This document shows positions 1-30,183 of a DNA stretch of 64,000 nt, in pieces. The stretch covers positions 1 through 64,000 of the forward strand of contig JAMWBK010000004.1 in assembly GCA_029953675.1 (NCBI GenBank). Direction: 5' to 3'. The position numbers and the translations under genes are program-made. A model generated the notes under the pieces. That model searched no databases, was not told the origin of the DNA, and saw only the letters and a program-made list of their open reading frames with translations. Each line of letters starts with the position of its first letter. The stretch's first letter is position 1. Origin of the DNA: Rhodosorus marinus CCMP1338. Lineage: Eukaryota; Plantae; Rhodophyta.

Positions 1-423
1 CTAACGTAACCCCAGACTAACGTAACCCCAGACTAACGTAACCCCAGACTAACGTAACCCCAGACTAACGTAACCCCAGACTAACGTAACCCCAGACTAA
101 CGTAACCCCAGACTAACGTAACCCCAGACTAACGTAACCCCAGACTAACGTAACCCCAGACTAACGTAACCCCAGACTAACGTAACCCCAGACTAACGTA
201 ACCCCAGACTAACGTAACCCCAGACTAACGTAACCCCAGACTAACGTAACCCCAGACTAACGTAACCCCAGACTAACGTAACCCCAGACTAACGTAACCC
301 CAGACTAACGTAAACCCATAAACCCCAGACTAACGTAAACCCCAGACTAACGTAACCCCAGACTAACGTAACCCCAGACTAACGTAACCCCAGACTAACG
401 TAACCCCAGACTAACGTAACCCC
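1..423 (+). repeat. Terminal telomeric array (CTAACGTAACCCCAGA)n, C-rich strand, ~26 units
   Basis: Perfect 16-nt tandem repeat from base 1 with a few variant units near 310-340. G4 run on the opposite strand. The same unit recurs as short tracts at retroelement junctions. Confidence 0.93.
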
Positions 424-832
424 TCAAACCCCTAGGTGGGGGTTTCATTGAGGCGGCTTTCTCCTCAAGGGCCGTCCAGACCCGCTGGAACTCTCCTTCT
501 AGTACATGTGCGACCTGTACCCCTGTGTCAAGGGTGGAGTGGCCCAGGACCAGACCCGGAAGGCCGACGAGAAGCAGGCTCGCTAATGGAGGTGCTGTCG
601 CGTCCAGAGAAAGCTCGAGGGCAGCCCGAAGAAGCCGGCTCCATGTAGAAACGTGTGCTCGGGGCACGAAGCGTCGTGTGGGCACCGGGCAATGTGTGAT
701 GCGCGTCCAATGCCTCCCCTCCTCCGTGATCTCAGCTACGAAAGCGTTCCAGCGGCAAATCCAGGCCTCCCGGTCAGAGAAGAACAGAGGCTCTTCTCGT
801 GGGCGTTTACGTCCCCTGCGTCTGGACGGCAT
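424..832 (-). CDS. ORF2 (RT-RLE protein) N-terminus, truncated; reads into the telomere repeat
   Basis: Aligns with residues 1-~140 of the intact family D ORF2 (WxxRWxxFVxELTxxGRxWTRLxHCPVxTRRFxP). Confidence 0.8.
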
Positions 833-2414
833 TATGATTGCTCGTTGTCCTGCGCTTCCTGCTGAACCGACGGGTTTGTATTGGCTGCAGTTTCAGGTTG
901 TAGTCCATTCTCGCTCGGTGTGGGGTCGAGGGGAGCTGGTGTCATTTCTGCATCCGTGCTAGATCCGTTGGCAGACCGGCGCGAGCGCTTAAGTTGAGGA
1001 GGTTCCGGCAAGTTGCACGAGAGTTCCGCATGGGGATTGTCCTCTTCTTCCACATCCTGCGGTACTTGGGATGTTCCACCGGAGTCACCCTGAGTGGCAA
1101 CAGTCCCACAGGCTGCCTGTGCATCGTCCGGAGACGACGAGGCTTCAGCGGCTGCGTTTGGTGCGGCTGCAGTCGTTAGGGGTTCCGCGCTCTCCCTGGA
1201 TACCGCAGGTTGCTGTTGAAGGGCTTGTAACTTTTCAAGCCGTTGGTCCAGCATCTCGTGCACTCGGGCGAGAGTTGTAAACGAGAGATGTCGACGGCTC
1301 AGCCGCGCGCGGATGCGTATGATCTGCTCGATCGCTCGTCTCAGCGTTTGAGCCCTGACATCTCCGCCGGCGAGTCGTTGCCGCTCGTTGAACCCCAGCA
1401 GGTTATCCGCCTCTAAACCGTGCCCGGTGTACAGGCTCACCTGTCGATCGGGGTGTCGCATGGTAAAGGATCCGAAAATCCCAGTCCGGAACACACCCCG
1501 GCTGATTGCGCTTTGGAGAAGAGGAATTGCATCAGGGTGGCACACGAGGCTCACGTGTGAAGAGATAAAGTCCAAATGCGCCACATACGAGCCGGGAATG
1601 CCCAACGCCCGGCAGAGGACCGTAGTGAAGTCAGAAGCAGCCACCTCATCCTGTCGTGGGGACGGATATTTCGGAGGGTAACAAGCACTGGCGTGGTCTC
1701 AGGGCCCCAGCTGGCCCCTCCCACTGTGGCGTGTAACTGCTTCAGGGCGGCATGTTGCGTCTGCGGCCCAGGCCTTCGCATGGTGCGGATGGGTGTCTCT
1801 ACACCGTTCTCTGGTACTTCTACCGCCGAAACCGCCGCGTAGGTGGGTCTGGGGGTGTCATTCCCAAGGGCCGGGAAAGCCGTCTCAAACCGGACACCGG
1901 CAGGGACACCTGTCCCGACTGGAACTTGATTGAAGCCCGTTCCGGCCGCAAGTTGATTGACCACCGCCGTCGGCCGGTGATGCGCCGAAGCTCCCGAGGG
2001 ATTCGAAGTCTGTGCAGAAGCTTGCCACATGTGGGGCTTCTGTGCAAGTTCCGTGAGGCGGCTGGTGACATTATGTATCTCTGTGGTACTGTTAATGCGC
2101 GAGTAGAGATTGAAGACTGCTTTGTAGAAGTTCGCGATGTCCTGCTCCCCAATTCCGAGGGCGTGATAGCACTGATCGTAGCTTCGAAGTTGGTGGAGGA
2201 ACGTGTTAGCGGGAGAGAATGACGTAGAAGGCTCTGTCCGACTCCCCTCCTGGCACGGTTCTTCTGGGCGTAAAGTAGTCGCTTGTAGTCCATCATGTGA
2301 CCCATGCCCGTCCTCTCGTTCAGCAATTGGAGAGGCAGGCAGCATTCCGCTCATTGCACCGGTATTCTTCGAATTCCCCTCCCCAAACAGAGGGGAAGTG
2401 CCAGTGTTTGGCAT
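832..2414 (-). pseudogene. ORF1 of family E copy 1, with one frameshift near 1660
   Basis: ORFs 1551..2414 and 832..1644 join by a single missing C in a C-run (compare RNVRPPRMDEVA at ~19400). Stop TAA overlaps the ORF2 ATG at 830-834. Confidence 0.75.
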
Positions 2415-2465
2415 ATTTTACCCCAGGCGAACCAAACCTACAAACTTAATTGCGAACCTTATCCA

Positions 2466-2515
2466 ATAACCCCAGATACCCCAGACTATCGTCATAACCC
2501 CAGACTAACGTAACC
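2466..2515 (+). repeat. Interstitial telomeric tract with variant units
   Basis: AACCCCAGATACCCCAGACTATCGTCATAACCCCAGACTAACGTAACC. Confidence 0.85.
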
Positions 2516-3029: not shown

Positions 3030-6000
3030 GCGTACACTTTACTGAAGAACTCCCTATTGGAGCCCATTAAGAAGCAATAAGGATCCTATTGGTCAGCAAA
3101 GAAACCCCTAATGGGTTGTGTGGCTACGTTCTAAGATAGGGACGATGTCATAGTCTGCTTCGTCGACACGACGTGCCTGGGTGGCAAGGATAGCGTTTCC
3201 TTTCCACAAAGTGCGGTTCAAGATCGCCCGAGCCTCACTTACTTGCGTTGCCCGCTGATCCAGGTGTATAGTCGCTTCCTTGAGGAACTCACTCGCTTGT
3301 TGTCCCATCTGCCCAAATGTTTCCAGGCAGAAGGGGACGAAGATGTCGTCGTTATGTTCTCCGATACTGTCACGGTATTTGGACTCTTTAAACTTTTCCG
3401 CTTTCCGTGCCGCATACCCGGTCTCCCAAGACGCTTTGTGGAGGTGTGTTCTTTGCAAAGGCGAGGTCACCTTCACATCGATCACGTAGAGCTTGCCTGT
3501 TCGTGGGTGTCGGGCTAGAATGTCAGGCCGAAGCCGACTGCCTTGGTAGTGTCCGGTCGGTTCTATTGTCACTTCTAGTCGCCATTGTCTCAGCACTGTC
3601 GCCAGGGCGTCCCTGACCATGTTATGCCGAATTGTCCAACTGCCGGTAGAGCTGGTGCAGTGGTGAAGGCGTTGAATGCCTGCAGCGTCGTGTGGTTGGG
3701 AACATATCGTACACGTACTAAGTATTCGTACACCCGGCAGGGGTAATCCCAACAGTTGTCGAAGGCTCAGGTTCAGTTCTCCGCTACTTAGGCCGCGTCC
3801 GTGTTTCCTTGGCAAGTCTCGCAGCCAAGTACCCCCTCCTGATCCCTTGCAGGAGCGTATTCGCGCACGTGCCGTCTCGCTGATCTCCGCGTTCTCCACC
3901 ATTTCCTCGAATGCCCGTCGGTGACTCCAGTTGGAGAGGAGTTTTTGGGTTGAACCGATCAAGGGCCTGTCGGGTGGTGTGTGCGGGTTCTCTGCTTGTT
4001 CTTGGCTCTCCAACGATTGCCATTCTGTTAGGCGAAGTATGGGGGCCGGTGTTCCTCGTGCCAGGCAGCGTTTTGAGTGGAGGCTCGCTTCGATTAGTTG
4101 TGCTCCAAGTTGATCCGTCGAGTGGAGCAGGGGTCGAATGTGATGGTGCTCGGTCAGGTTCGTCGATGTGCAGGCATCGAGTAGCGCTCCTAGGTGGCTA
4201 GATCCAGTCCAATTGAGCTTCAGAGTCTGTCGCCAACTGCTGAAGAAGGCGAGGGGTTGTATTCGTGTTCTCATCGCTAGGCCTGCGCCACCCCATCGGC
4301 AAGGGAGCTGGATCTGCGCTTCGACCACGTCTTTTGCGGGTCCTGTGAGGCCCTGGCCTTCGAGGAGCGAGCCGCACAGTTTGTCGAGTTCCAGGAGCGA
4401 GATGCGATCGGCTTCGCGTGCGAGATTGGCTCCGTATTGTAGGGCGAGCGTGCGTAGAGCAAAGTCTAGACGCGGTCCTGCGCAGTAGCGGAATAGGCAC
4501 AGTTTAATTGGTAGCTCAGTGGTCGGTAGACGGATGACCTCTTGGACGAGTTTTTCATGTTCTCGTTGTAGCTTCCTGTTCGCGTCTTGGACGTAGGTCC
4601 GTGTGCCAATAGGGATGGAATAAAGTTGGATTCCGTCCCGGGTGACATGTACGTCGGGAATTTCCCTGTTGACGAGTCTGGTCGTCGGCAGTTGGAGTCC
4701 AAAAAGCTCGCATTTCGTCCTTTGAAGTTGTGCGCCTATTTCGGGGAGGTGGTGCTCGCTCCAGTGTAGCGCTTCTTTCACGTCCTTCAGAGGGCCAAGT
4801 AAGGTGAGGTCGTCGTGGATTGCGCTAAGGGTGATCCTCGGAAACCGGTCTCGTAGTGCTCGTAGGAGTGGGGAAAGGGCGAGCGCGTGTAAAGCAGGTC
4901 CCAACGGATCGCCTTGTTGGACTCCAGTCCAGGCTCGGAGCTGGAGCCAGTCATCGACATCGCTGTCTCGCCATCCGAATTGGCGTGGGGCGCTCTCGCC
5001 TCGTGGTCCGTAGCTCATTGTCATATGCGGCTTCAATTCGGGGAAAGCTAGCTCGATGATACGGTTTGCGAGGCGTCGGTCGATTCTGTTGAACGCGTTT
5101 GCGAGATCAAGTTTGAGGAGCACGTCATTTGGGCGCGCTGCGAGGTGGGCTTCCGCGAGGTGGATGGCGTGTTCGCAGCCGCCGCTGACCGAGATGCCGA
5201 GTTGTTCCGGGAGCAGAAAGTCGCGAAGGGGCGTGGCGACAGCGCGAAGTGTCCATTGGGTGACGGCCTTCCGCAGTACCTCAGGAATCCCTAGCGGGCG
5301 TAGGCGAAGAGGGTACCCTTGTCTAGCTTCGGCAGACGTTCGCTTGTCTTTCGCGAGGAGTCGGTTGCTGCGCATGGCTTCGAGAAACACGTCAGGGAAG
5401 CTCTCCGGAGTGGTGGCAAGCTTGCGAAGGAAGCGTACAAGTACCGGTTGCGTTGTCATGGTGAGACTTCGCAGATGTTCGGCTTTGAGTCCACTCGGCC
5501 CGGGGGCTGTGGCGTACGGTAGGTGTTCCAGCGTTGACAGGAGGCTCTCGTCAGAGGCCAAAGTCGGGTCCCATATCTTGCGTTGCAGTCCGTTGAGCTT
5601 TGCCTGTAGGGCGTCTTCAAGCTCCGAGGAGAGCGTTGCGGCCTCGTACTCAGGGAAGAGCGTAGTCAGAACGCGCCAGGTGGCAGGAGTCTTCGAGGCA
5701 AGATCGGTGGCCAGTAGGAGTTGGCTAGACTGGGACATACGTTGAGCTGTGGCGAGTTGTAGGGCTCGTTTCTGTCGGTGGCGGGTCTGAGGCGGCGGAG
5801 GTACGATACAGTTGGTGTCAAGGGTTTTGCTGTGAGCAGTAAGGTGTTCCCACACCGTGGAGAACCTTCCGTCCATAACGGCGAGCATCTGCGCAGAAGG
5901 GGCCAGGTCGCCTGTGTAGCCGAGTGCGAGACTGGGGAGAGCGAAGATGAACAGGCGTGACAGGTTCGGCGCTGACGTATCAAGGGCAAGTTCCAGGGCT

Positions 6001-6085
6001 TTCGACATGAGATGGTTCCAGCGTGTTTTCAGGTTATCGGGGACGAATTGGCGAGTAGGCGTCGGAGCCTGAGTCAGCTGCCACC
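3030..6085 (-). mobile_element. Family B, 5'-truncated copy with nearly complete RT-CCHC-RLE coding region and 3' UTR
   Basis: RT motifs LKLDLANAFNRIDR, GVQQGDPLGP and AIHDDLTLLG; knuckle CTICSQPHDAAGIQRLHHC; RLE RPDILA...VIDVKV...K. The 3' end is joined to GGTTACG. Confidence 0.92.
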
Positions 6086-7106
6086 CCAGACTGTCCCGCA
6101 AAAAGTCTTGCGTCAACCTCCCGCTCCGCCCAAAGGTCTCTATCGCGATCGGGATGAACTTCTCCTCGGGCTTTTCCACACTCATCGCCTCTTTATAGTG
6201 CGCAAGCTTGTAGTTCTCCGCCAGTTTCGCTGCATACCCGTTTTCTGCACTGCCACGCCTTATGTACTTTTCCTGTAGCGGTGAAATCACCGTCACATCG
6301 ATCGCGTACTTTTGAAAGGTCTTTGGATGGGTCGCCACGATATCTGGTCGCAGCTGGTAATTCTCAAAATACCTCTGCGGTTCTTGCTGTATGTCAAGAA
6401 AATTCCATCGGTTGAGCCATCTCCCTAGCTCCGTACAGAGCTCGTCGTGCCGTCTCTGCCATAGTCCCGTCGATGTTGGACAGTGTTGAAATCGTTGCAC
6501 CCCATTTGGGCCATGTTTCCTACGGCAACTGGTGCACTGCTCCGTTGTCCGCAACCCCGGAATCGGCAGCCCCAGCAGTTGTCGAACATTTACCTGCAAT
6601 TCCTGTGAGTCCAGCTTTCTCGGCTCTAGCAACGGTAGTTCCCGCAGCCATACCCCCGAACCCGAGCCGGCCGCCGATCGGATTCTTGCACGGTGTTCAT
6701 GCGAAACGCCCTCGTTGCCGACCAAACGTTGGAACGCGCGATGGTGTGCCTCCCTAGAGAGGGTTTGTTGTATTGAACCATGGTTCCAATCGCGAGGGGA
6801 GTCCGCTACTTCAGGTGCGGCTTCGTCTCTCAATTCGGGCAGCTTGGCCAGTCTCCGGATCCGCGGCGCCGTGTCTGGGCACAGTCTCCGCTCTATAGCA
6901 CGACTAGACGCGCGGATTTGCTCACCGATCGTCTCCGTTGACACCTGCAGTCGGCCTAGGTGGCTGATGTGTATGTCGCCACCTTGCCTGACCTGTCGCT
7001 CCACCTCCGTTATATAGGGCCACTGACCCGCATGGTCTCTCAGGGTCTGCGCCCAGGCCGAGAAGAACGCAATCGGCTGTATTCTTGCACGGGTCGCGAA
7101 CCCCAA
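3108..7106 (-). CDS. 1332-aa chimeric open frame: family A CCHC+RLE fused in frame to family B RT+CCHC+RLE (no native start)
   Basis: Continuous ORF. The junction at 6083-6092 is the telomeric 10-mer ACCCCAGACT overlapping both parents (compare 2766-2790 for A and 23311-23340 for B). Confidence 0.75.
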   Translation of the reverse strand: MGFATRARIQPIAFFSAWAQTLRDHAGQWPYITEVERQVRQGGDIHISHLGRLQVSTETIGEQIRASSRAIERRLCPDTAPRIRRLAKLPELRDEAAPEVADSPRDWNHGSIQQTLSREAHHRAFQRLVGNEGVSHEHRARIRSAAGSGSGVWLRELPLLEPRKLDSQELQVNVRQLLGLPIPGLRTTEQCTSCRRKHGPNGVQRFQHCPTSTGLWQRRHDELCTELGRWLNRWNFLDIQQEPQRYFENYQLRPDIVATHPKTFQKYAIDVTVISPLQEKYIRRGSAENGYAAKLAENYKLAHYKEAMSVEKPEEKFIPIAIETFGRSGRLTQDFLRDSLGWQLTQAPTPTRQFVPDNLKTRWNHLMSKALELALDTSAPNLSRLFIFALPSLALGYTGDLAPSAQMLAVMDGRFSTVWEHLTAHSKTLDTNCIVPPPPQTRHRQKRALQLATAQRMSQSSQLLLATDLASKTPATWRVLTTLFPEYEAATLSSELEDALQAKLNGLQRKIWDPTLASDESLLSTLEHLPYATAPGPSGLKAEHLRSLTMTTQPVLVRFLRKLATTPESFPDVFLEAMRSNRLLAKDKRTSAEARQGYPLRLRPLGIPEVLRKAVTQWTLRAVATPLRDFLLPEQLGISVSGGCEHAIHLAEAHLAARPNDVLLKLDLANAFNRIDRRLANRIIELAFPELKPHMTMSYGPRGESAPRQFGWRDSDVDDWLQLRAWTGVQQGDPLGPALHALALSPLLRALRDRFPRITLSAIHDDLTLLGPLKDVKEALHWSEHHLPEIGAQLQRTKCELFGLQLPTTRLVNREIPDVHVTRDGIQLYSIPIGTRTYVQDANRKLQREHEKLVQEVIRLPTTELPIKLCLFRYCAGPRLDFALRTLALQYGANLAREADRISLLELDKLCGSLLEGQGLTGPAKDVVEAQIQLPCRWGGAGLAMRTRIQPLAFFSSWRQTLKLNWTGSSHLGALLDACTSTNLTEHHHIRPLLHSTDQLGAQLIEASLHSKRCLARGTPAPILRLTEWQSLESQEQAENPHTPPDRPLIGSTQKLLSNWSHRRAFEEMVENAEISETARARIRSCKGSGGGTWLRDLPRKHGRGLSSGELNLSLRQLLGLPLPGVRILSTCTICSQPHDAAGIQRLHHCTSSTGSWTIRHNMVRDALATVLRQWRLEVTIEPTGHYQGSRLRPDILARHPRTGKLYVIDVKVTSPLQRTHLHKASWETGYAARKAEKFKESKYRDSIGEHNDDIFVPFCLETFGQMGQQASEFLKEATIHLDQRATQVSEARAILNRTLWKGNAILATQARRVDEADYDIVPILERSHTTH

Positions 7107-8524: not shown

Positions 8525-9424
8525 CTATACACCCACAAGTTCCTGGGTCTTCTCCCACAGGATCTTGTTGTTGGTGGCAGTCACATCCTTGCTTGCGATT
8601 TTTCCTGCTCGTGTGTTTCCCCCCATGTTCATAATGTTCGGTCCATACATTTTTGAAGCTCCAGTAGCGAGCACCTCGTCCGATGTTGCTGCGTACAGGG
8701 TGGAAATTGCACCTTTGTCAGGAGACTGCATCATGAACTCCATCCCCCTCCCAATCCTTGTCAGCGCGCTCGTTTCTGCCTTTCTCAGCAAATCCGATTT
8801 TACAACACCGGGTTGTACCACAAACGACCTTACTCCGTCCGCCCGCACGCGATTATCAAGCTCTTGCGCGAACATAATGTTGTACAGCTTGCTAGTCCCA
8901 TACACATCAAGACCGCTCTTCTCGTAGCTCCTTCCCGCCACATCATCTAGGTCGGCCTTTGACACGTTCGCCTGGAGTGGCGACACTGTGACCACCCTTG
9001 CAGGAGCCGACTTCTTCAGCGTGTCTAACAGTAGAATCGTTAGTAGGTACGTCCCCACATGGTTTGTCCCTAGCGTTACTTCATAGCCATCCACGGTCTT
9101 GGAATGTGGGACCACCCCTGCACCGGCGTTGTTGACGAGAAGGTGAAGCGGCAGTCCTTTCTCGATAAACGCGTTTGCAAACGATCTTATGCTATCCGAA
9201 TTCGCTAAATCCAGCTGCATGAACTCCACCTTGGCATCAGGCTTCATCTTCTTGAGCTCCGCTACTGCATCAAGTCCCTTCTTCGGGGTTCGCGACGCGA
9301 TGATAACGTGTGCGTTGTTAAGCACGAGGTACTTTGCGGTAGAGAACCCAATGCCGATATTCGATCCGGTAACAATCGCGACTTTCCCGCTCTGATCCGG
9401 TATCTTGTTGACATCGAAACCCAT
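8525..9424 (-). CDS. Short-chain dehydrogenase/reductase (retinol dehydrogenase/WWOX-like), ~299 aa, apparently intronless
   Basis: TGSNIGIG Rossmann motif, LVNNAG, YGTSK catalytic motif, QLDLA. Likely start MGFDVNKIPDQSGK at 9424. Confidence 0.9.
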   Translation of the reverse strand: MGFDVNKIPDQSGKVAIVTGSNIGIGFSTAKYLVLNNAHVIIASRTPKKGLDAVAELKKMKPDAKVEFMQLDLANSDSIRSFANAFIEKGLPLHLLVNNAGAGVVPHSKTVDGYEVTLGTNHVGTYLLTILLLDTLKKSAPARVVTVSPLQANVSKADLDDVAGRSYEKSGLDVYGTSKLYNIMFAQELDNRVRADGVRSFVVQPGVVKSDLLRKAETSALTRIGRGMEFMMQSPDKGAISTLYAATSDEVLATGASKMYGPNIMNMGGNTRAGKIASKDVTATNNKILWEKTQELVGV

Positions 9425-11190: not shown

Positions 11191-11819
11191 GAATTAGAAG
11201 AAGGAATTAAGCTGACCTTGCTCAGACGACGAAAGTTCTGCTCTTTTGTAAGAAATCATATTTGTAATAAATTCCTTCATGCCGTTGCTATGAGCCGAAA
11301 TCTCTGTAGTTTTCTCCGATTTTCTTCCGAAATTGCAATTTGTATTTTTGTGAGTTTTCTGTCTACTGTGTGCTGGCGGGGCAAATGTATATGCTTTATT
11401 TTTCGGTAGGGTCAGTAGTGACACCTAGTACAGGAAATAAAGTTACATTGGTTCGTCGGTTGTGTCAGTTCGAACTCTTTTCGCATGGCCAATGACGACG
11501 TTCAGGAGAAGGTCCGAAGGCAAGGTCCTTGAAGCTTAAGTTTCCCGAGTTCATTGCATTCCATTAAAATGTAGGACTGTCCGTCATCGTCGATCAATTT
11601 CGAATAGGAAACAGCTTAGTAAGTGTGGTCACACGGCATCGCTTCACGATCCCCAGTACCTTTTCGATAGGGCAAATCATCCTCTCCAAGAGCGGAAGGT
11701 CTTCAAGGTTGACGGTGATGGATCTCCAGGTTAAATCTAAGATACGTGCATAGGATAGTTATATTCTACACCTGGCGATCATTTCCTCGAAGTGGGGCCG
11801 AGGTTCTCTGTGACTAGAA

Positions 11820-12112
11820 GCATCGTAGCACATAGCACTGCCGGCGTGGAGACGGAACAGGTTCACCCCTCGGTGAAGTTGCTGCTTGCAAACCGTTTAC
11901 TTGTCGATACTGTATTTAATTTGCACGGAATATTAACAAAGAACCCCACAAGACAACGGAAAATTCACAGAGGCCTATACACCCACAAGTTCCTGGGTCT
12001 TCTCCCACAGGATCTTGTTGTTGAGTGGCAGTCACATCCTTGCTTGCGATCTTTCCTGCTCGTGTGTTTCCCATGTTCATAATGTTCGGTCCATACATTT
12101 TTGAAGCTCCAG
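11820..12112 (-). pseudogene. Partial duplicate of the SDR 3' end and downstream flank, cut off by telomeric repeats
   Basis: Near-identical to 8370-8664 with small indels; ends at CCAG|GGGTTACG. Confidence 0.85.
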
Positions 12113-12134
12113 GGGTTACGTTAGTCTGGGGTTA
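12112..12134. repeat. G-strand telomeric tract followed by an inverted C-strand unit (fold-back)
   Basis: GGGGTTACGTTAGTCTGGGG-TTA-CCCCAGACTA. Confidence 0.75.
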
Positions 12135-13833: not shown

Positions 13834-13857
13834 GGGGTTACGTTAGTCTGGGGTTAC

Positions 13858-14290
13858 CGGCTCTGACCCGCGCCCTTCGCAGTAGTCGACTCCTGCCGTT
13901 CACGAAGCCTAACAAGGGTTCAGTGCCGCAGGAGCATCCCGGAGTTCGCCCTATCGGAGTACCAGAAGTTTTGCGCAAGGTAGCAACGCAATGGACTCTT
14001 CACGCGGTTATGGACAGGGTGCGTGAGCTCCTGGGTGCCCATACAACTGGGTATTGGAGTAAGTGGCGGGTGCGAACGCTCCCTTCACGCGATCCAGGCC
14101 CATTTGTCATGCGAACCCGATTCGGTGGTCCTTCGCCTAGACCTTGAGAATGCCTTTAATCGCATCGACCGACGCCTTGCCAAGCAACTGGTGGACGAAC
14201 ACTTGCCGGAGCTCGCACCAGTGTATAGACTTGGATATGGAAGCGACAACGCGGACTCACCGACGCTCTGTGGCTGGCGAGCCCGTGATC
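13858..14290 (+). mobile_element. Internal RT fragment of a telomeric-type element following a telomeric tract (13834-13857)
   Basis: RPIGVPEVLRK, GVSGGCERSLHAIQAHL and LRLDLENAFNRIDR, with one frameshift. Confidence 0.8.
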
Positions 14291-14773
14291 CACGAGCCCC
14301 AAGCTGGAGGCAGGCTGCGCCACCAGTAGTTGAGTCTGGGACCGGCACAAAAGTGGGAAAGCAAGCAGGCCGATTCCAGTATGCTGTCGGGTAGGTGCTC
14401 AATGGCGTCGGTAAGTTGCTTGTGCCGTGCCAAAACTCGCTCGCAGGAAGCTTGGACAAAGTTGTCAGTCCCCAATCCGACGCCGTGGTGTTCGAACCCT
14501 TCACGTTCGCTGATTAGTCGCAGAGTGGGTGGCAGAGAGGCCAGCGACACGTCCCTCGGGGGGAGAAAGCGACATTTTTCTGTTTCCACAGTCAAAACCG
14601 ACGCGACGTGCAATCGCTTCGATCGCGGTCAGCCCCCGAGCCAGGGTGTCAGGGTGCCCAGCAATGTTACGTCATCGTGGTACGCGCAGATTCGAAGATC
14701 CGAGACCTCAGTCGAAAGACGTAAAAGTACGAGCTGTAGGGCACAGGCATGAAGAAGAGGTCCGCAAGGGTCG
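14290..14773 (-). mobile_element. Family F RT fragment (YHDD region)
   Basis: Near-identical to 55835-56335. Confidence 0.85.
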
Positions 14774-14925
14774 AGCTTAACTAGCTCTTCTATCCCTTGT
14801 CCTGTTCGAAATACTGCTGGAACTCTCAGGTTTAACGATAAGCGGAGGGATAGGGGCTAAAGCTTTCTAGACGCTTCTATAGATGCTTCACCATCTCCAC
14901 AGAACTGCTTCCCCATCTTGTCACC

Positions 14926-17700: not shown

Positions 17701-17805
17701 AGCGGGGATTGTGATAAGAGCTCAGGTTGAATTTCGACGGGAGTAAACGAGCTTGTAGAAGGTCGGCCGAAGTTGTCTAATCCTTGCAGAGAGAGCGGAT
17801 TGAAC

Positions 17806-19225: not shown

Positions 19226-20942
19226 ACGCTCAGCGCACTGTCCAACATGCTCCCGCTCGAGAATCAGCTGCACAATCCGACCAGCAGGACGATGCCCGGG
19301 CGCACAGTCCCAGCAGGCCGCGCTGCGACAGCTGCAGGCCACAGTGGGAGGGTCCTCCTGGGGACCTGAGACCAAACCGGTACTGGCGACCCTGAGGAAT
19401 GTAAGACCGCCACGGATGGACGAGGTAGCCCCATCGCACTTCACGACGGTTCTTTGCAGAGTCTTGGGGATTCCGAGCTCTAATGTGGCGCACGTGGACT
19501 TCATCGCTTCCCACGCGTGCTTACTATGCCATCCGGACGCGATTCCGATTCTGCAGAGCGCCATCTCTAGGGGCGTTTTCAGGACAGGGATTTTCGGATC
19601 GTTGACCCAGAGACACCCCGATCGGCAAGTGACTCTCTACACTGCCGGCCAGGCACTGGATACAGACAACCTGTTGGGCTATAACGAACGTCAGCTTATT
19701 GCCCCAGCGAACATCGGGCCCCAGACCCTGAAACGGGCAATTGAACAGACTATCCGGATTCGCGCGAGGCTTCGCAGGAGGCAACTCTCATTCAACACTC
19801 TCGCAGCGATACACGAGTACCTGGAGAGCAGACTAGGAGCCCTACAAGCCAGACAACGTACTCCAACGGTACCCGGGGAGAGTGCGGAACCCCCAGCGTC
19901 TGCAGCCGCCACGAACGTAGACTCTGAAGCCTCGTCCCTTACAGGGGACGCACAGGCAGCCCGTGGGACAGTCACGCTCCGGGTAGTCCCCTAGCCTAAG
20001 TACCTGAAGAAGATGCACCCGAGGATAACCCCTCACACAGAGCTCCCCTACAACCTGCCCGAGCCTCCTCAACACAAGCGGTCGCGAGTATCCACTGATG
20101 GCACAGGCCAGGATACCGAGATGACTCCGGCAGCCGTAGAGGTTCCACAGGGCAACACTGCACCACAGACCGACCACACTGCCACCCCTCACGCGATGGA
20201 CACATAGGACAGCCAGGAAGCACCTACGCAATAATGCCCAGACGACAATGGGGAATCAAACGAAGACGCGACGAGCCTCTGTTCTTCTCGGAGCGACAAG
20301 CCTGGATCAAACGTTGGACCGACTTCGTTGACGAGGTTACGACAGGAGGAAGGCACTTGACGCGCCTAACACACTGCCCGGTACCCACCCGGCGCTTTGT
20401 GCCCCGTGCCCACGTCAATACCTGAGCCACCATCTTCGCGCAGCTCTTGAGATTTCCATGGACACAGCTGCACCCGCCAACGCCAGTCTGCTTCTTGTCG
20501 GACCTCCAGACCTGGTGCTAGGACGTTCTGCACTTGACATCGGTATTCAGGTCACACATGTGCTTGAAGGAGAATTCCATACTGTCTGGACCGCGCTTGA
20601 AGACAGGGCGTCCCTACTGCAGCAGAATACTGCCCCACCGGGAACCGAAGCGACTCGCCGCCAAGCTTTAGGACGCAAGAAACAAGCCCTGAAACTGGCA
20701 CATCTCGGTCGCCTCTCGGACGCTGCTCGTCGACTACAGGCAACGGAAATGGCTCCTTTCACCGAGACTACCTGGCGCCAACTCCAAGGAATCTTCCGAG
20801 AACCTGCGGCAGGTGACTTACCAGACGAGTTGGTGGAGGCCCTGGAATCACTGCACAACACTAACAACACCACTCTTAAGCGCCGATGGGATCCCAGGAA
20901 AGCCGCTGATGAGGGCCTCCTGTCGATTGTGGCACGTCTTCC
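19226..20942 (+). mobile_element. Family E copy 2: partial ORF1 and ORF2 N-terminus, degraded, 3'-truncated by telomeric tract 20943-20981
   Basis: Homologous to 424-1800. TAATG stop/start at 20232-20236; internal stops and frameshifts. Confidence 0.85.
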
Positions 20943-20981
20943 GGGGTTACGTTAGTCTGGGGTTACGTTAGTCTGGGGTTA

Positions 20982-21570: not shown

Positions 21571-21673
21571 GGTTACGTTAGTCTGGGGTTAGTCTGGGGT
21601 GAGGGCTTTCGGACTTTGAAATTTAAGTTCATTGACGCGAGCTTGGAGTGTTTTACAAGGAGTTGATTTGGAA

Positions 21674-23260
21674 ATGACCCTTCCCGAGGCCCTGCCTCCG
21701 GACGGAAGTGGCATAAACCCCCTACAATCGGACGAACCTATGCACGATGCTTCTACCCAAAATTTTACCGGGCGAGAACCTGATCCTGCTGCTACTCTCC
21801 CAACTGCACCTGCTACTGCGGCGCCGGACACCAGCACTCACCATCTGAAGATCTCAATGAGCTGTGGACCGCTGCAACTACACCTCGACGTTCCCCAAGC
21901 CAAAGCCACGAAGTACAACGCCCTGATGCTGAAATTCATGGAACTTGCTGCACAAGCCCATGCCAGTGGCAACGAGGCTCAGCTCCTTCACACTCTGACT
22001 ACAACGCCCCAACGACCTACCCAGACACCGCGCCCCCTACATGTCTACGAACCGGCATCCTACGCCAGCACAGCAGCCCGCCCCAGATCTCCCGACGCGC
22101 GCGATCTCGATGCTGATGCATATCCCGATCTCGCAGCAGCCAATGACCGCACACGCCCGACACCTCGACCTAGTAGCCGGCCAATGAGTTGGTCGACACG
22201 TGTCCGAGGTAACCAGACCCCGGCAGCCGCGAATCGATCATTTTTCGCGAGCATTCAAGGTCTGGAGTTCGAGAGCAAGGAAGATATTGACGCATTTGTG
22301 CTACTCAATGCACGACCTCGCGACGGAACCAAGAGCAAGGCCCACCACGCCTGGGATATCGAGCGCCTTGCCGGCCTGCAGAAGAACACGCTGCTGCAAC
22401 TCGATTATTTCGATCACCACGTGCACATCATTGCACACCGGACTGCCCTACCACGGGTCCGCGACGCAGTGAACGCAGGCGCCTTCTACCCCACTACCGG
22501 CAACCTCCACCCAGCCGAACGCATTCAGGCAGTCAAGCTCTCTGCGAGCTCCATGGACTACCTGAGTATGCGCGAGAAACTCCGCCATCGGCCCGAGGAC
22601 TACCCGCGAGTGGCCCTGATCCACAACCTGCGGCGCTATCGCCGTATCCAGCGGATCGTTGAGCGCCGTAGGGGCCTCTCCCCCAACGCTCGGGAGGCCC
22701 TGCTCGGCCACGTTCGGGCAGAACTCAACCGAACTCTGGCCAGTATCCATGCCCACGCCCAGAAGACACCTGACACCGGCACCAGGGTACCTTTCGAGGA
22801 CCCTGAACTACCCCAGCTCTCGACCACCACCAACCGACAGGTAGCACGGGCTCCGGCGCGTGTAAGCACTGCACACAAACCACCAGTGGTAGCCGGGGAG
22901 AGCGCGGAACCCCCCGCGTCTGCAGCCGCATCACAAGCAGACCACCAAGCCTCGACCCCTAATGGGGCCGTACAGGCAGACCGTGAGGCAGTCGCCGCTT
23001 CGGGTGATTCCAGCGCGACACCTCCACTACCACCGGAGGACGCTGCAGAGGACAACCCGCACGCGGAGCTCCTCTCTAACCTCCCGGAGCCGCCCCAACA
23101 GAAACGCACGCGAACGACTGCAGCTGGCACCAGCCCCGACTTGGAGATGACCCCAGCCAACCACGAGGCGGCTACAACCACTGCTGCCGGACTCACTGGC
23201 TACTCTTCAAGCTCCAATGCCATGGACCTACAAGCCTGCCCCCCCGCCTCCCAACAGTGA
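21674..23260 (+). CDS. Intact ORF1 of family D (~528 aa); element spans 21601-23262 and is cut immediately after the ORF2 ATG
   Basis: Open frame MTLPEALPPDG...PPASQQ. The 3' part is identical (reverse complement) to 29915-30149, which runs into the intact ORF2. Homologous to family B ORF1. Confidence 0.82.
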   Translation: MTLPEALPPDGSGINPLQSDEPMHDASTQNFTGREPDPAATLPTAPATAAPDTSTHHLKISMSCGPLQLHLDVPQAKATKYNALMLKFMELAAQAHASGNEAQLLHTLTTTPQRPTQTPRPLHVYEPASYASTAARPRSPDARDLDADAYPDLAAANDRTRPTPRPSSRPMSWSTRVRGNQTPAAANRSFFASIQGLEFESKEDIDAFVLLNARPRDGTKSKAHHAWDIERLAGLQKNTLLQLDYFDHHVHIIAHRTALPRVRDAVNAGAFYPTTGNLHPAERIQAVKLSASSMDYLSMREKLRHRPEDYPRVALIHNLRRYRRIQRIVERRRGLSPNAREALLGHVRAELNRTLASIHAHAQKTPDTGTRVPFEDPELPQLSTTTNRQVARAPARVSTAHKPPVVAGESAEPPASAAASQADHQASTPNGAVQADREAVAASGDSSATPPLPPEDAAEDNPHAELLSNLPEPPQQKRTRTTAAGTSPDLEMTPANHEAATTTAAGLTGYSSSSNAMDLQACPPASQQ

Positions 23261-23262
23261 TG

Positions 23263-23301
23263 TCTGGGGTTACGTTAGTCTGGGGTTACGTTAGTCTGGG
23301 G
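23263..23301 (-). repeat. G-strand telomeric tract at the orientation switch of the array
   Basis: TCTGGGGTTACGTTAGTCTGGGGTTACGTTAGTCTGGGG, with a plus-strand element to the left and a minus-strand element to the right. Confidence 0.9.
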
Positions 23302-25098
23302 GCGAGTAGGCGTCGGAGCCTGAGTCAGCTGCCACCAGCGGTTGCCATTATCGGTTACGTTGAGAATGAAGTCGTGCAGAGACGAGAGCCAGGCGTTCGA
23401 GTCGGTCTCGAAGAGTGACTGCGTCGAAGTGGGAGGTCGTTGGCGACGAGCACGAGCACGGCGGGATGAGCGAGAGCGGTTTGGAGTATATTCGTCTGAG
23501 GAGCTGCTCATGATTGAGTCGACGAGAGGGAGTCGGGCGTGAGGTCGTCGACGGCGTTGGCAGGCTTAGGGCGCTTAGTGGGTGGAGCCACTTGTCTCTT
23601 GTCTTGGGCCGTCGAAAGTCCTTGCATCGGCTCTGCAGGGGTCACTGGTTGATCGCTAGTGGTGGAGGGGTCAGGCTCCGAGTCTAGTGGATCACGGGCT
23701 GTCGCGGCAGGCGTCTCAGGCGTGTTGTCCTCCCGAGCGGCTGGGACTTGGGCAGAATCAGCGCTATGCGTAGTCGCTGCGAGGGGTTCCGCACTCTCCC
23801 TCTCCAGTGCCGCCGGTTGAGGGTCAGCTACCCGGGTTCGGTCCAGAGAGCGTGGCTCTCTGCGCTCGGTTGTTGTCGAGTGCTCTGGAAGCTCAGGGTC
23901 GAAGAATGGCACGCGCAGGCAACTGTCGGGTGCTCGTTGAGCGTGAGCGTGGAGGCTGGCCAGGGTGCGATCGAGCTCGGCCCTGACGTGGCCCAGGAGT
24001 GCCTCTCGGTTGTTGGGTGGGAGACTCCTGCGATTTGTAACAATCCGCTGGATCCGTCGGTAGCGGAGCAGGTTGTGGATCAGTGCAGCGCGGGGATAGT
24101 CTGCCGTTTGGTGACGGAGCTTTTCCCTCATGCTCAGGTATTCGTGTGACGTTGGAGAGAGCTTGACAGCTTGGATACGTTGATCAGGAGGCAGGTGTGC
24201 TCCTCTGGTGGGTTCGAAGGCCCCTGCGTTGGTAGCGTCGCGGAGTAGTTGGAAGGCGGTATGGTGAGCGATGACGTGTACATGATGATCAAAGTAGTCC
24301 AGCTGGAGCAGCGAATTTTTCTGAAGGCCGGCTAGGCGCTCGATATCCCAAGCATGATGGGCCTTGCTTCTGGTGGAGTCCCGAGGTCGAGCATTGAGTA
24401 GCACAAATGCATCAACGTCCTTCTGGCTCTAGTACTGCAGCCCATGAATGCTCGCGAAAAACGAGCGATTGGCAGCTGCTGGGGTCTGGTTGGCGCGGAC
24501 ACGTGTCGTCCAGCTCATTGGTTGAGGTTGAGCTCGAGTCCTTGTCCGTGCTTGCTCATTGGCCGTTGCGAGATCTGGGAATGCATTGGAATCGAGATCA
24601 CGTGTCTCGGGAGATCGCGGGCGGGCTGCTGCAGTGGCGTAGTTTGCTGGTTCGTAGACAGGGAGGGGGCGTTGTGCCCTCGGGGCAGCTTGTTGTGGCG
24701 TCGTAGTCAGATTGTGAAGGAGTTGAGCCTCGGTGCCATTGGCGTGTGCCTGGGCTAAGAGACCCATAAACCGCAGCATAAGCCCATTGTAGAGCGGGGT
24801 CTTATGCTTGGGCGCGTCGAGATACAGCTTCAGCGCTCCGCAGCTCAGGTCAATTGCCAAGGGAGTAGGTACGTCGTTTTCAAGTGCAGATGCAGTTGTA
24901 GGCTCAGAAACAGGTACTGGCAGAGGCTCGGGTCCGTCTGCTCTCAGGCTAACGGCCGGGAGGTCTTCCATCGTTGCGTCTGTGCAAAAGCCCCCCCCAT
25001 CCGGAGGCACGGGCTCGAGAGTAGTCATATCACTCGATAAGCGTTCGTAGAAAGAATGAAAGTGTAACTTTATCACCACGATAAACTCCAAAGTCCAA
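23302..25098 (-). mobile_element. Family B 5' half: 5' end, ORF1 (25028-23508, one in-frame TAG at 24429) and ORF2 N-terminus (from 23511), 3'-truncated
   Basis: The ORF2 start ...NRWWQLTQAPTPTR overlaps the start of the B copy at 6050-6085. ATGA overlap at 23508-23511. Telomeric tract 25108-25169 upstream. Confidence 0.87.
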
Positions 25099-26695: not shown

Positions 26696-29600
26696 TGTAA
26701 ACTTTACTCGGCAACTGCCTAATGCAGCGCAACACTAATTCTATCAAGATCTAGGGAAAATGTGTTTAACCCCGACTCCCGGGGTCTCTAGCTACGATAA
26801 AAAAGAAAAATAAGGGATCAGTGGCTGGTCCGACTGATCCACGCGCAAAGCCCCTAACGCGAGCTCTGCGTTCCCTGCCCAGAGTGTTCTGTTTAGTTGA
26901 GCCCGCACGTTGCTCAACTCGTACTGCTTAGTTAGCATGTGCCCACAGCCCTCACGGAGAAAGTCTTGGGTCATCTGCCCTGTTCTGCCGAAGGTTTCGA
27001 TCGCAATCGGAATCAGTTTGTCATCTGGATGCTCTGTCGCCGTCGCCTCCTTGTAGTGTGCAAGTTTCCAACGCTCGGCCTGTTTTGCTGCATAACCATT
27101 GTTGTCTTTGCTGTTGGCTAGGTGTCTCGCCTGTAGGGGTGACACCACCGTCACATCGATCGCAAATCGTTGCCAGGTTCGAGGGTGTATAGCTACCAAG
27201 TCCGGACGTAGATTCGAGTTCGTGAAGTAGTCTGTAGGTGCTTGCTGAACATCTCTGAACTGCCATCTGTTAAGCCAACGCGCCAGCTCAGTGCAGAGCT
27301 CATCATGTCGCCGTTGCCAGAGCCCAGTCGAGGTCTGACAATGATGGAATCTTTGTACACCGTTCGTACGGTGTGTACTATTACACGTAGTACACCTCTC
27401 CGTCGTCCGCAGTCCCGGAATCGGGAGACCCAGCAATTGTCGGATATTCAGGTGCATGCCTCTCCCACTCAATTTTCGGGGTCCGAATTGTGGCAAATCT
27501 CTTAGCCAGACGCCTGAACCTGCTCCTGCAGCGGAACGGATTCGGGCACGATGTTCCGGGTCGAGTAAGGGATCCGTGACCAGTCGGGTGAAAGCAGTAA
27601 GGTGTGCCTCTCTTGAGAGGGTCTGTTGTAAGGAACCTTGCTTCACCGCAGACTGGTCAGGGGGGGAATTTGCTGCAGGGGCAGCAGTCAGGTACGTGGG
27701 GTTGAGGAGCTGCCTTATTCGGGGGCTGGTTTCCGGTCTCAGTCTCCCCCTAATGGCTGTAGTTGCCACTAGGATTTGGGAGGGGAGGTCGTCAGTAGAG
27801 CGGTGTAGTGTCCTCGGGGGGTTGAGCAGCTGTGGTGTAGCTTCCTGGGTGCGTTCTAACAATTTTTGTAGGTGGGGCCAATAGCCCTTGTTAGCTGCAA
27901 AGGTTTGCATCCAACCTGTGTAGAAAGAAATAGGTTGGATGCGCCTTCTAGTGCAGAATCCCAGTCCCCCCCATCGGCAGGGGAGTGCTACCTGCTTCCA
28001 AGCCGGGTGCGTTCCGTCAGGGTCGTCCGCGTGGGCTGTTTGTAGACAGCCTAGAAGTCTTTCAAACTGTAGTCGTGTGTTGTAGTCCGCTTCTCGTGCT
28101 AAACTTCTGCCGTAGTGGTAAGCCACTGTCCTTAGGGTGTAGTCAAGTCTCGTTTCCGAGCAGTATCGGAACAGCGCCAGTTGTGTGTTGAGCTCTTCAG
28201 GAGGCAGATGGGCTATCTCTTTGCCCAGTGTTTCATGCTTGTTTTGTAGTGTTCTCAAAGCTTCTTCCACATATTTTCTCGTCCCAACGGGAATGGAGTG
28301 TATGGTTACTCCATCGCGAGAAACATTGAGGTCCGGCATGTATCTGGTAACCAGTCGAGGGGATGCTATGTGGTAGCCGAATAGGGTGCACTTTTGAGGC
28401 TGTAGTTCCGCCCCAATGGTAGGGAGGGCATTTTGACTCCACAGTAGGGCATCTTTCAGGGACTCCAGGGGGCCCACGAGCGTGATATCGTCATGGATGG
28501 CGACAGTAGTCAGCTCAGGGTATTTCTGCCGCAGTGCTTCGAGAAAAGGCGCCAGTGAGAGGGCGTGTAAGGCAGGTCCCAAAGGATCTCCTTGTTGTAC
28601 TCCCGTCTGCGCTTGTAGGTGTAGTCGATCTGGATGCAGTGTTCCGTCTGTAGCTTTGGGGCGCCAGCCAAGGAGCGTAGGTGAGTCCTCGCAGTTGCTT
28701 CCATATCCCAGGCGGTAGATGGCTGCCAGCTCTGGGTAATGGCGGTCGACTAGTTGTTTGGCAATACTCCGATCAATTCGGTTGAACGCATTCGCCAGGT
28801 CGAGTCGTAGAACTGCCGATTGTGGTTCACAGTAGAGATGGGCCTGTATTGCGTGCAGGGACCGTTCGCAACCTCCACTGACGGCAAGGCCTAGTTGCAG
28901 GGGGACGAGGAGCTCCCGAAGTCGTGTGGTCACGTGACCTAGTACCCACTGTGTCGCTAGCTTTCGTAGGACCTCAGGAACGCCAATAGGTCTGACAGCA
29001 GGGTGCGCAGGTGGGGGCCCAGTAGTAGGGGACTTGACAAACGGCAGGAGCCTGCTGCTGCGGAGAGCCCTGGTCAGGACTGCCGGGAGCCGCTCCGGAG
29101 CCGTGGCCAACTGTCTCAGGAACCGTACCAGGTGCGGGTGTGCCTCACGCGTTAGCATCTGTAAGTGCTCTGCGCGGAGCCCGCTGGGCCCGGGACATTT
29201 GTCTTTCGGCAGCAGGGTCAGTTTGGCGAGTAGACTCTCATCCGAGGCTTGTCCGGCCAGCCACCTGACCCGTAGTTGGGCGTTGTCCTGTGCAAGTAGT
29301 GTCTGCAGGGTTTGCTGTAGATCCTCAGAGAGGGGGGTGTCTGTCGGGTCCGGGAAGAGGTCTTCGAGCTGGTTCCAGGTGCCAACGTTCTGTTTGGCCA
29401 TTGCAGAGGCTGTGAGGCGGTATGCAGCGTCAGAGAGGCGACCTTGTTGGGCGAGTTTGAGTGCTTGTTTGCGCCGCCAGCGGGTTTGTTGTGTGGTAGT
29501 GTCAGGACCTCTGTGTGGTGTAGCCGGCCTCGGTTGCGCTGCAGAGTCCTCTAGAGCGTTCCACACGGTATGAAAATCGCCAGCCAGGATGTGATCGATC

Positions 29601-30149
29601 TGCTTGCCAATAGGAAAGTGCGTATAGCCCAGGATCAGACCAGGAAGTCCGATGATGAGAAGGCTCGCGTCCTCGGGAGCTGTGTCGTCTCGAGCAAGCT
29701 GGAGGGCGGCACTGCAGAGGCTGCTCCATTTGTTGACGGCGGCAGAGGGGATGAATCGGCGGGTTCGGACCGGGCAGTGGGCTAGACGTGTCCACAGGCG
29801 TCCACTGTCCGTGAGCTCATTGACAAAGTCAGTCCAACGTTGGATCCATGCCGGTCGGTTGGCGTGGAAGAGGGGTTCATTCGGGCGGCGTTGAGTACTC
29901 CTTCTTCTGCGGGGCATCACTGTTGGGAGGCGGGGGGGCAGGCTTGTAGGTCCATGGCATTGGAGCTTGAAGAGTAGCCAGTGAGTCCGGCAGCAGTGGT
30001 TGTAGCCGCCTCGTGGTTGGCTGGGGTCATCTCCAAGTCGGGGCTGGTGCCAGCTGCAGTCGTTCGCGTGCGTTTCTGTTGGGGCGGCTCCGGGAGGTTA
30101 GAGAGGAGCTCCGCGTGCGGGTTGTCCTCTGCAGCGTCCTCCGGTGGTA
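26696..30149 (-). mobile_element. Family D, longest copy: ORF1 C-terminus, intact ORF2 and 3' UTR
   Basis: Flanked by telomeric tracts 26678-26695 and 30150-30183. The 3' end AGTAAAGTTTACA is joined to GTTACG. Confidence 0.92.
26792..29917 (-). CDS. Intact RT-CCHC-RLE protein (~1041 aa), CRE/SLACS/MoTeR-like non-LTR clade
   Basis: CPGPSGLR, RPIGVPEVLRK, LRLDLANAFNRIDR, GVQQGDPLGP, AIHDDITLVG, LPCRWGGLG, CTTCNSTHRTNGVQRFHHC, RHDE, RPDLVA..AIDVTV..K and FGRTG; no APE domain. Confidence 0.93.
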   Translation of the reverse strand: MPRRRRSTQRRPNEPLFHANRPAWIQRWTDFVNELTDSGRLWTRLAHCPVRTRRFIPSAAVNKWSSLCSAALQLARDDTAPEDASLLIIGLPGLILGYTHFPIGKQIDHILAGDFHTVWNALEDSAAQPRPATPHRGPDTTTQQTRWRRKQALKLAQQGRLSDAAYRLTASAMAKQNVGTWNQLEDLFPDPTDTPLSEDLQQTLQTLLAQDNAQLRVRWLAGQASDESLLAKLTLLPKDKCPGPSGLRAEHLQMLTREAHPHLVRFLRQLATAPERLPAVLTRALRSSRLLPFVKSPTTGPPPAHPAVRPIGVPEVLRKLATQWVLGHVTTRLRELLVPLQLGLAVSGGCERSLHAIQAHLYCEPQSAVLRLDLANAFNRIDRSIAKQLVDRHYPELAAIYRLGYGSNCEDSPTLLGWRPKATDGTLHPDRLHLQAQTGVQQGDPLGPALHALSLAPFLEALRQKYPELTTVAIHDDITLVGPLESLKDALLWSQNALPTIGAELQPQKCTLFGYHIASPRLVTRYMPDLNVSRDGVTIHSIPVGTRKYVEEALRTLQNKHETLGKEIAHLPPEELNTQLALFRYCSETRLDYTLRTVAYHYGRSLAREADYNTRLQFERLLGCLQTAHADDPDGTHPAWKQVALPCRWGGLGFCTRRRIQPISFYTGWMQTFAANKGYWPHLQKLLERTQEATPQLLNPPRTLHRSTDDLPSQILVATTAIRGRLRPETSPRIRQLLNPTYLTAAPAANSPPDQSAVKQGSLQQTLSREAHLTAFTRLVTDPLLDPEHRARIRSAAGAGSGVWLRDLPQFGPRKLSGRGMHLNIRQLLGLPIPGLRTTERCTTCNSTHRTNGVQRFHHCQTSTGLWQRRHDELCTELARWLNRWQFRDVQQAPTDYFTNSNLRPDLVAIHPRTWQRFAIDVTVVSPLQARHLANSKDNNGYAAKQAERWKLAHYKEATATEHPDDKLIPIAIETFGRTGQMTQDFLREGCGHMLTKQYELSNVRAQLNRTLWAGNAELALGALRVDQSDQPLIPYFSFLS

Positions 30150-30183
30150 CCCCCAGACTAACGTAACCCCAGACTAACGTAAC

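Follow-up and report, generated by a model that had tools for sequence, protein, structure and literature searches.

A chromosome end with telomere-specific retrotransposons

The DNA analyzed here, called the window in the following, comprises the first 64 kb of the 3.19-Mb contig JAMWBK010000004.1 (assembly GCA_029953675.1) from the nuclear genome of the red alga Rhodosorus marinus CCMP1338 (PMC10250338). The start of the window is a real chromosome end, occupied by an array of telomere repeats, behind which lie several copies of a telomere-repeat-specific retrotransposon of the type without long terminal repeats (non-LTR). These copies belong to the sister families E, D, and B/A and carry two open reading frames (ORFs), with the stop codon of ORF1 overlapping the start codon of ORF2. 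An earlier note on this DNA had drawn attention to the overlap and proposed that it couples translation of ORF2 to termination of ORF1. A full element measures ~4.9 kb and is made up of a 5' untranslated region (UTR) of ~65 nt, an ORF1 of ~505-545 amino acids (aa), an ORF2 of ~1040 aa, and a 3' UTR of ~100 nt without poly(A). Since the assembly is nanopore-based (NextDenovo) with short-read polishing by Pilon, 1-nt indels that stand alone within repeats could be errors. The element copies and the telomere repeats adjoining them are listed below by position and strand.

1..423 (-): terminal telomere array, 26.8 copies of a 16-nt unit (G-strand TCTGGGGTTACGTTAG), starting at contig base 1
428..832 (-): E1 ORF2, first ~135 codons, ending at a break that the terminal telomere caps; tblastn identity of 55% with D ORF2 aa 1-137
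834..830 (-): E1 junction TAATG, TAA stop of ORF1 overlapping the ORF2 ATG
835..2414 (-): E1 ORF1, ~526 codons, with a 1-nt frameshift (deletion) near 1657 in a C-run
2415..2478 (-): E1 5' UTR, preceded by telomere repeats 2478-2515
3030..6090 (-): element A, ORF2 from about residue 60 to a stop at 3108, plus 3' UTR; joined in frame with part of another copy (6090-7106)
19308..20234 (+): E2 ORF1 remnant, 5'-truncated, in-frame stops at 19992-19994 and 20205-20207
20232..20236 (+): E2 junction TAATG
20234..20943 (+): E2 ORF2 remnant, interrupted by a stop at codon 64 and a frameshift near 20440; it is cut at 20943, where telomere repeats (20943-20981) take over
21601..21673 (+): D1 5' UTR, after telomere repeats 21569-21600
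21674..23260 (+): D1 ORF1, intact, 528 codons from the first ATG
23258..23262 (+): D1 junction TGATG, the element ending at the G of ATG
23263..23301 (+): telomere units (2.4) capping the D1 break, head-on to the broken B ORF2
23302..23511 (-): B ORF2, first 70 codons by translation (MSSSSDEYTPNRSRSSRRARARRQRP...WWQLTQAPTPTR), cut at about 23302
23511..23508 (-): B junction ATGA, ORF2 ATG overlapping the TGA stop of ORF1
23508..25028 (-): B ORF1, 61% aa identity to D ORF1 over aa 6-434, in-frame stop 24429-24431, unalignable tail
26696..26791 (-): D2 3' UTR, ending ...AGTAAAGTTTACA directly into telomere repeat 26678-26695, no poly(A)
26792..29917 (-): D2 ORF2, intact, 1041 codons, reverse transcriptase and C-terminal restriction-like endonuclease
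29919..29915 (-): D2 junction TGATG
29917..30150 (-): D2 ORF1 remnant, the final 77 codons left in a 5'-truncated insertion, matching D1 23028-23262 at 100% identity; preceded upstream by telomere repeats 30151-30183

The frameshift in E1 ORF1 may be an assembly error. E2 is a decayed copy, one of its in-frame stops lying 9 codons ahead of TAATG, and D2 combines the 77 remaining ORF1 codons with an intact ORF2 and a 3' UTR. Element A was identified as a 5'-truncated copy of the B family because a contig from outside the window (L003) shows a B-type ORF2 N-terminus running into an A-type ORF2. The fusion in A is part of a chimeric open frame of 1332 codons (3108-7106, minus strand), in which an ORF2 3' part without its own end is joined in frame to the 5'-truncated B-family ORF2 with no telomere repeat between them, suggesting template switching or recombination. 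Exact-product look-ups of D2 ORF2, D1 ORF1, and E1 ORF1a returned no gene on record, the searchable literature holds no description of these algal elements, and close relatives were absent from a metagenome scan based on the ORF2 alignment as well as from a scan of viral contigs.

Stop-start junctions between ORF1 and ORF2

All five overlaps reported in the earlier note are present, three of them on the minus strand, and each joins the stop of an ORF1 homologue to the start of an ORF2 homologue. In every case the stop terminates a frame homologous to the 528-aa D1 ORF1, and the ATG is codon 1 of a homologue of the 1041-aa D2 ORF2 (tblastn and translation). The ORF2 products of E1, E2, and D2 align from their first methionine, sharing MP(R/S)RR...EPLF..AW, while the N-terminus of B is 17 aa longer and aligns with the others thereafter. 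The five sites nevertheless represent only four lineages, as D1 and D2 count as one on account of the 100% identity of the last 235 nt of their ORF1, and most copies are broken.

By themselves the junction motifs are common, with 27-172 occurrences per strand. As ends of long frames, overlaps of stop and ATG close all three testable ORF1s, compared with only 2 among the 32 further frames that stay open for 200 codons or more (a background of ~6%). Silent sites are saturated, 62-75% of them differing in the comparisons E1/E2, D/B, and E/D (pS 0.62-0.75). The tail of ORF1 is fast-evolving, carries indels, and is barely alignable, and still its frame closes on the ORF2 ATG. In B, the overlap is reached at a non-homologous position and together with the longer ORF2 N-terminus.

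The arrangement recurs in relatives outside the window. A further E copy on R. marinus contig 7 (E3; L005) reads ACG CAA TAA TGC CC and has an intact ORF1 tail. A distant family with an ORF1 only ~21% identical (L004) shows AAT TAA TGC CCC, followed by MPRRSR. In another family (L002), the homologous ATG (MPS..LWLFYTDREAW) precedes the ORF1 TGA by 8 nt, so that the two ORFs overlap by 11 nt and ORF2 is read in the +1 frame. Across the lineages inside and outside the window, the spellings therefore comprise UAAUG four times, UGAUG once, and AUGA once, besides the L002 AUG located 8 nt upstream of the stop. A sister family, G (L005), has a spacer of 31 nt between the two ORFs; the ORF1 core is homologous in this G/F family, and the decayed copy in the window has no stop at the corresponding place. 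The earlier claim that the overlap is kept despite divergence consequently stands for silent-site-saturated lineages and outside relatives, but has to be narrowed with regard to L002, with its different overlap and ORF2 frame, and to G. Judged from these sequences, the conserved trait is a stop within 8 nt of the start in the group formed by E, D, B, L002, and L004, and it is not universal in the wider group.

The G/F family is a more distant reverse transcriptase/restriction-like endonuclease family found at 43228-48645 and 54409-62551 of the window and at 11200-15430 of L005. Its ORF1 shares the 'VRNVRP...' core, and frameshifts pervade all of its copies; a pair of 2-kb copies, at 54409-56405 and 59479-61473, lie in opposite orientations and are 98.9% identical.

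ORF1, an orphan protein under purifying selection

The ratio of amino acid-changing to silent divergence (dN/dS) of ORF1 amounts to 0.14-0.24 with dS saturated, which identifies ORF1 as a real protein that diverged in active lineages. No Pfam domain was detected in it. Word-indexed protein searches with the single sequence and with a 17-row alignment found nothing, whereas an exhaustive HMMER profile search retrieved 11 relatives; the former negatives hence reflect a limit of sensitivity and not absence. The AlphaFold (AF2) model of ORF1 is poor, with a predicted local distance difference test score (pLDDT) of 49. It contains long helices and a beta-alpha-beta-beta-alpha-beta core of moderate confidence, and matched no PDB entry better than E 0.01. 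The predicted topology gives a hint, and only a hint, of a core resembling the RNA recognition motif. The tail of the protein is disordered and bears a KRxR patch.

Reverse transcriptase and predicted endonuclease of ORF2

The ORF2 products of D2 and A contain the Pfam domain RVT_1 (E 1e-8 to 2e-12), and the best PDB sequence matches of their reverse transcriptase (RT) are R2 proteins. The closest database proteins are metagenomic RTs, mostly unnamed, at 25-31% identity. In the C-terminal 282 aa, the motif series C-x2-C-x14-C-x9-RH-x21-E-x11-PD-x14-D-x29-K was recognized. An alignment of 11 sequences shows C83, C86, C101, H112, and D162 to be invariant, and R111, E134, P146, D147, and K192 to be present in at least 90% of the rows.

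A sequence-only PDB search with this endonuclease region found nothing. Its AF2 model (pLDDT 82.7), used for a fold search, returned R2 proteins as all of the top seven PDB matches (E 7e-6 to 1.4e-4, probability 1.00, TM score 0.50-0.57), followed by Prp8 and PD-(D/E)XK cap-snatching endonucleases. Conserved motifs and fold search together assign the elements to the restriction-like endonuclease (RLE) type, the fold search being decisive: according to the model, the ORF2 C-terminus has an R2-like RLE fold. The earlier note had called the elements RLE-type from the sequence alone, in agreement with the RVT_1 domain and with a C-terminal model that matches only R2 proteins at the E <=1e-4 level. 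Other hallmarks of RLE-type non-LTR elements are likewise present, namely the absence of LTRs, 5'-truncated copies (D2, A, E2, and others), and site-specific insertion in a fixed orientation.

Insertion target and history of the chromosome end

The elements are telomere-repeat-specific. They are flanked by short blocks of telomere units, and their sense strand always runs parallel to the G-strand, toward the chromosome end. Intact 3' UTRs (~100 nt) end in ...A(A/G)TAAAG-N3-4-TAC(R) and pass directly into GGTTACGTTAGTCTGGGG without poly(A), in near-constant register with the repeat and with the G-strand downstream. This end is common to 3' UTRs of different families (26696-26791, 3030-3107, 25170-25277, and 13726-13833), which also have two hairpin-like palindromes in common (e.g., GAGACCCCGG..TCGGGGTT). 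From their recurrence in these sequences, the common end and the palindromes are candidate RT-recognition elements.

The 16-nt telomere unit itself is unusually long for an alga. A review terms red-algal telomere motifs "mostly missing or fragmentary" (PMC7046594), and the genome paper mentions neither retrotransposons nor a telomere sequence (PMC10250338). A search of the literature with six 10-mers, covering every rotation and both strands, yielded only chance primer matches, and a scan with two telomere units found no match in metagenome contigs.

At their 3' side, several copies are truncated and capped by G-strand repeats in differing registers: E1 at 428, E2 at 20943, and D1 at 23262. 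Such caps fit an erosion of distal elements followed by telomerase healing and re-insertion. In D1, telomere repeats replace ORF2 immediately after its ATG. A junction-specific RNA end was considered and not preferred, as E1 and E2 are cut elsewhere and show the same capping in different registers. With the truncations at 428 and 20943 lying elsewhere, the D1 break is taken as a coincidence, albeit one that would be expected a priori in only about 1 of 1000 breaks. The window additionally holds an inverted 11-kb block (12112-23301), bounded on one side by a head-to-head telomere palindrome (GGGGTTACGTTAGTCTGGGGTTAC|CCCAGACTA at 12112-12144) and on the other by the healed D1 end joined to the broken B copy (23262-23302). 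The block and its bounds suggest a history of fold-back or end fusion at this chromosome end.

Translation of ORF2

Regarding the way in which ORF2 is translated, termination-reinitiation is the best reading of these junctions, and on balance we lean toward it. The element would be transcribed as a single RNA, which ribosomes would enter at the 5' end to read ORF1. Having terminated at its stop, some of them would restart at the ORF2 AUG, which either shares nucleotides with the stop (UAAUG, UGAUG, AUGA) or sits 8 nt upstream of it, so that few ORF2 enzymes would be made per many ORF1 molecules. We infer from the abutting frames that both ORFs are carried on one mRNA and that initiation at ORF2 depends on termination at ORF1. 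Coupling at UAAUG or AUGA has precedents in SART1, caliciviruses, influenza B, the hypovirus CHV1, and a victorivirus (PMC3894237, PMC10275272).

Access to the ORF2 AUG by scanning is hard to conceive, since 16-20 ATG triplets lie in the 1.5 kb upstream, rendering leaky scanning implausible. That the annotated AUG is the real start follows from the conservation beginning at Met1 in combination with the position of the next in-frame ATG, which is found only at codon 129-173, past the conserved N-terminus. A purine occupies position -3 in six of seven junctions, and all observed configurations are compatible with termination-reinitiation.

Several observations weigh against this reading. SART1, victoriviruses, and caliciviruses each need a cis RNA element, and none was detected at the seven algal junction sequences. 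The earlier note had proposed to look for conserved RNA structure around the junction; folding was carried out and revealed none. Single sequences did not fold with unusual stability upstream or downstream of the junction (z-scores -0.8 to +1.4), the consensus fold of three sequences was weak (-8.5 kcal/mol with a positive covariation term), and that of seven sequences contained 0 pairs. Upstream of the junctions there was neither a UGGGA motif, as in TURBS (termination upstream ribosome-binding site), nor any common 7-mer. With only seven diverged sequences, these structure and motif tests have low power. Scans of the window for Rfam families and tRNAs returned nothing, meaning that it holds no known ribozyme, internal ribosome entry site, or frameshift element. 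Moreover, the spacer of family G lacks the overlap, and the junction of E and D is common by descent, which reduces the independent configurations to about three. None of the copies in the window is both complete and intact, the two-ORF structure being a composite of several broken copies, and single-base indels near the junctions are not fully excludable in a nanopore assembly, even after short-read polishing.

Among the alternatives, the strongest is that translation of ORF2 does not rely on ORF1 termination and instead uses an internal entry site or a second RNA that is spliced, internally promoted, or 5'-truncated, the abutting codons being the product of spacer loss in a compact element. 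The lack of a cis RNA element of known coupling type at the junctions speaks for it, as do the 31-nt spacer in the sister family and the intron-rich genes of R. marinus (24,821 introns; PMC10250338); in addition, the 5'-truncated copies D2 and A have an intact ORF2 that could be transcribed from upstream elements. Compaction alone, however, fails to explain a stop at most 8 nt from the AUG despite saturated divergence, indels in the ORF1 tail, and the shifted start of B, and spacers are tolerated by most non-LTR elements (PMC3894237). The contigs L002 and L003, which may be of RNA or DNA origin, cross the ORF1-ORF2 junction unspliced. We thus regard independent translation as unlikely, although it is the alternative to be taken most seriously.

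Next in rank is an overlap devoid of function, inherited among closely related dead copies and helped by coincidence. Identical junctions in D1 and D2, a homologous one in E and D, defects in all examined copies, and the sheer frequency of the motifs are in line with such an origin. It becomes quite improbable in view of the 62-75% silent-site difference, at which ORF1 and ORF2 remain under purifying selection; saturated silent sites and selection on both frames indicate that the lineages diverged as active elements. Three distinct configurations all hold stop and start together, and only 2 of the 32 control frames overlap.

Least of all do we expect a gag-pol-style mechanism, in which a programmed -1 frameshift of the ribosome shortly ahead of the ORF1 stop would yield ORF2 fused to ORF1. 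In its favor, E1, E2, E3, D, B, and L004 all have ORF2 in the -1 frame, that frame stays open over 18-60 codons ahead of the AUG, and D has a C CCC CCC run 18 nt ahead of the stop. Against it, there is no canonical (A/U-type) or conserved slippery heptamer (only the non-canonical A AAC CCG in E1 and C CCC CCC in D, none in E2 and B), no downstream stimulatory structure was found, the L002 ORF2 is in the +1 frame, and the ORF2-frame peptide upstream of the AUG is not conserved, conservation starting exactly at Met1.

Termination-reinitiation being retained as the preferred reading, a more far-reaching version of it can be formulated. A red-algal telomere-specific RLE lineage may have gained an unrelated ORF1 and may reinitiate after a 1.6-kb ORF without the TURBS, pseudoknot, or downstream hairpin that every characterized long-ORF system needs, by a structure-independent route that is possibly mediated by a protein or by the nascent peptide. 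We offer this as speculation and consider it rather doubtful. A candidate mediator would be the ORF1 tail, which is disordered, or else the start itself, where an invariant AUG-CC(C/G) goes together with a basic MPRRRR N-terminus.

Comparison with known systems

In functional terms, the closest counterpart is SART1, a telomeric element of Bombyx mori, in which translation of ORF2 is coupled to ORF1 termination at UAAUG (Kojima et al. 2005, as cited in PMC3894237 and PMC10275272). This precedent, invoked by the earlier note, is borne out by both citing papers. SART1 and the algal elements have in common the insertion into telomere repeats, the two ORFs, and the UAAUG overlap. What the earlier note had missed, namely the specificity for telomere repeats and the location at a real chromosome end, makes the parallel closer than was stated there. 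SART1 belongs to the R1 clade and has a poly(A) tail and a gag-like ORF1. It differs by its N-terminal apurinic/apyrimidinic endonuclease (APE) and by the need for an RNA structure downstream of the junction, whereas the algal elements combine a C-terminal RLE with an orphan ORF1, no poly(A), and no detected junction structure. A SART1-like coupling in a two-ORF RLE element is plausible from the sequences.

Closest in architecture are MoTeR1 of Magnaporthe oryzae, FoTeR of Fusarium oxysporum, and R2. The fungal elements resemble the algal ones in combining an RT with a C-terminal RLE and in inserting into telomere repeats, a likeness of architecture. They differ in having a single ORF of ~1150-1184 aa without an ORF1, fungal hosts, and TTAGGG telomeres. 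The order of endonuclease motifs described for MoTeR, FoTeR, SLACS, and CRE (CCHC-like, RHD/N, E, R/KPD, and a terminal motif; PMC12857005) is the same in the algal ORF2. The element arrays at the chromosome end and the signs of end instability in the window recall, at least in outline, accounts of MoTeR (PMC7367193).

R2 is likewise site-specific, and it provides the best PDB sequence match for the RT; in structure, the C-terminal endonuclease region matches nothing but R2 significantly. R2 carries N-terminal zinc-finger/Myb DNA-binding domains and targets the 28S rDNA, and a self-cleaving ribozyme is transcribed along with it. The window yielded no Rfam family, ribozymes included. R2 consists of a single ORF (PMC2881922), as do the fungal telomeric MoTeR1 and FoTeR (PMC12857005), in keeping with the earlier statement that the RLE clade is often single-ORF.

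The trypanosomatid elements CRE, SLACS, and CZAR are RLE-type and site-specific like the algal elements, with a different target, the spliced leader, and different hosts. SLACS and CZAR also possess an upstream ORF1 besides the RT ORF. Caliciviruses, influenza B, CHV1, and the victorivirus HvV190S show the UAAUG or AUGA spellings after a long upstream ORF (PMC10275272, PMC2699510); they are RNA viruses relying on upstream TURBS, a pseudoknot, or coding sequence, in contrast to the algal junctions with neither UGGGA, upstream conservation, nor structure detected.

Neighboring features

Between the arrays of telomeric elements lies an apparently intact short-chain dehydrogenase gene (8525-9421, minus strand; Pfam adh_short, E 1e-27), with duplicates of its flanks at 11817-12112 and 21113-21397. 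Its 299-aa translation, counted from the first ATG, corresponded to no gene on record in an exact-product look-up. A 27-nt unit is repeated nine times with 97% identity at 17947-18193, in frame within an ORF of 172 codons beside element fragments. Just inside the telomeric array, 32566-36487 (plus strand) encodes the pol of a Ty3/gypsy-type LTR retrotransposon with RVT_1, RNase H, an integrase zinc-binding domain, and a Tf2-type SH3 domain. Further inward lies the one gene on record for 29729-52500 (locus L001). It occupies 39729-42500 (plus strand) and encodes a 923-aa protein whose N-terminus, with the hydrophobic stretch VVAVVVVLLYGVAGLP, resembles a signal peptide; neither a Pfam domain nor cluster relatives were found for it.

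Implications

The locus shows three features for which the searchable papers gave no description: a red-algal telomere repeat of 16 nt, a family of retrotransposons that target telomeres alongside telomerase, and a chromosome end that has apparently gone through erosion, healing by telomerase, renewed insertion, and fold-back fusion. The junctions UAAUG, UGAUG, and AUGA, together with the 11-nt overlap and the 31-nt spacer, would constitute a natural variant series for the requirements of reinitiation after a long ORF. To our knowledge, stop-start coupling has been demonstrated in one retrotransposon only, the APE-type SART1. If the proposed coupling is true, a second, unrelated group of telomeric elements would have arrived at the same solution in a different endonuclease class, for which a single ORF is the textbook case, and bicistronic coupling would be a recurrent answer to the task of making little polymerase per many ORF1 molecules.

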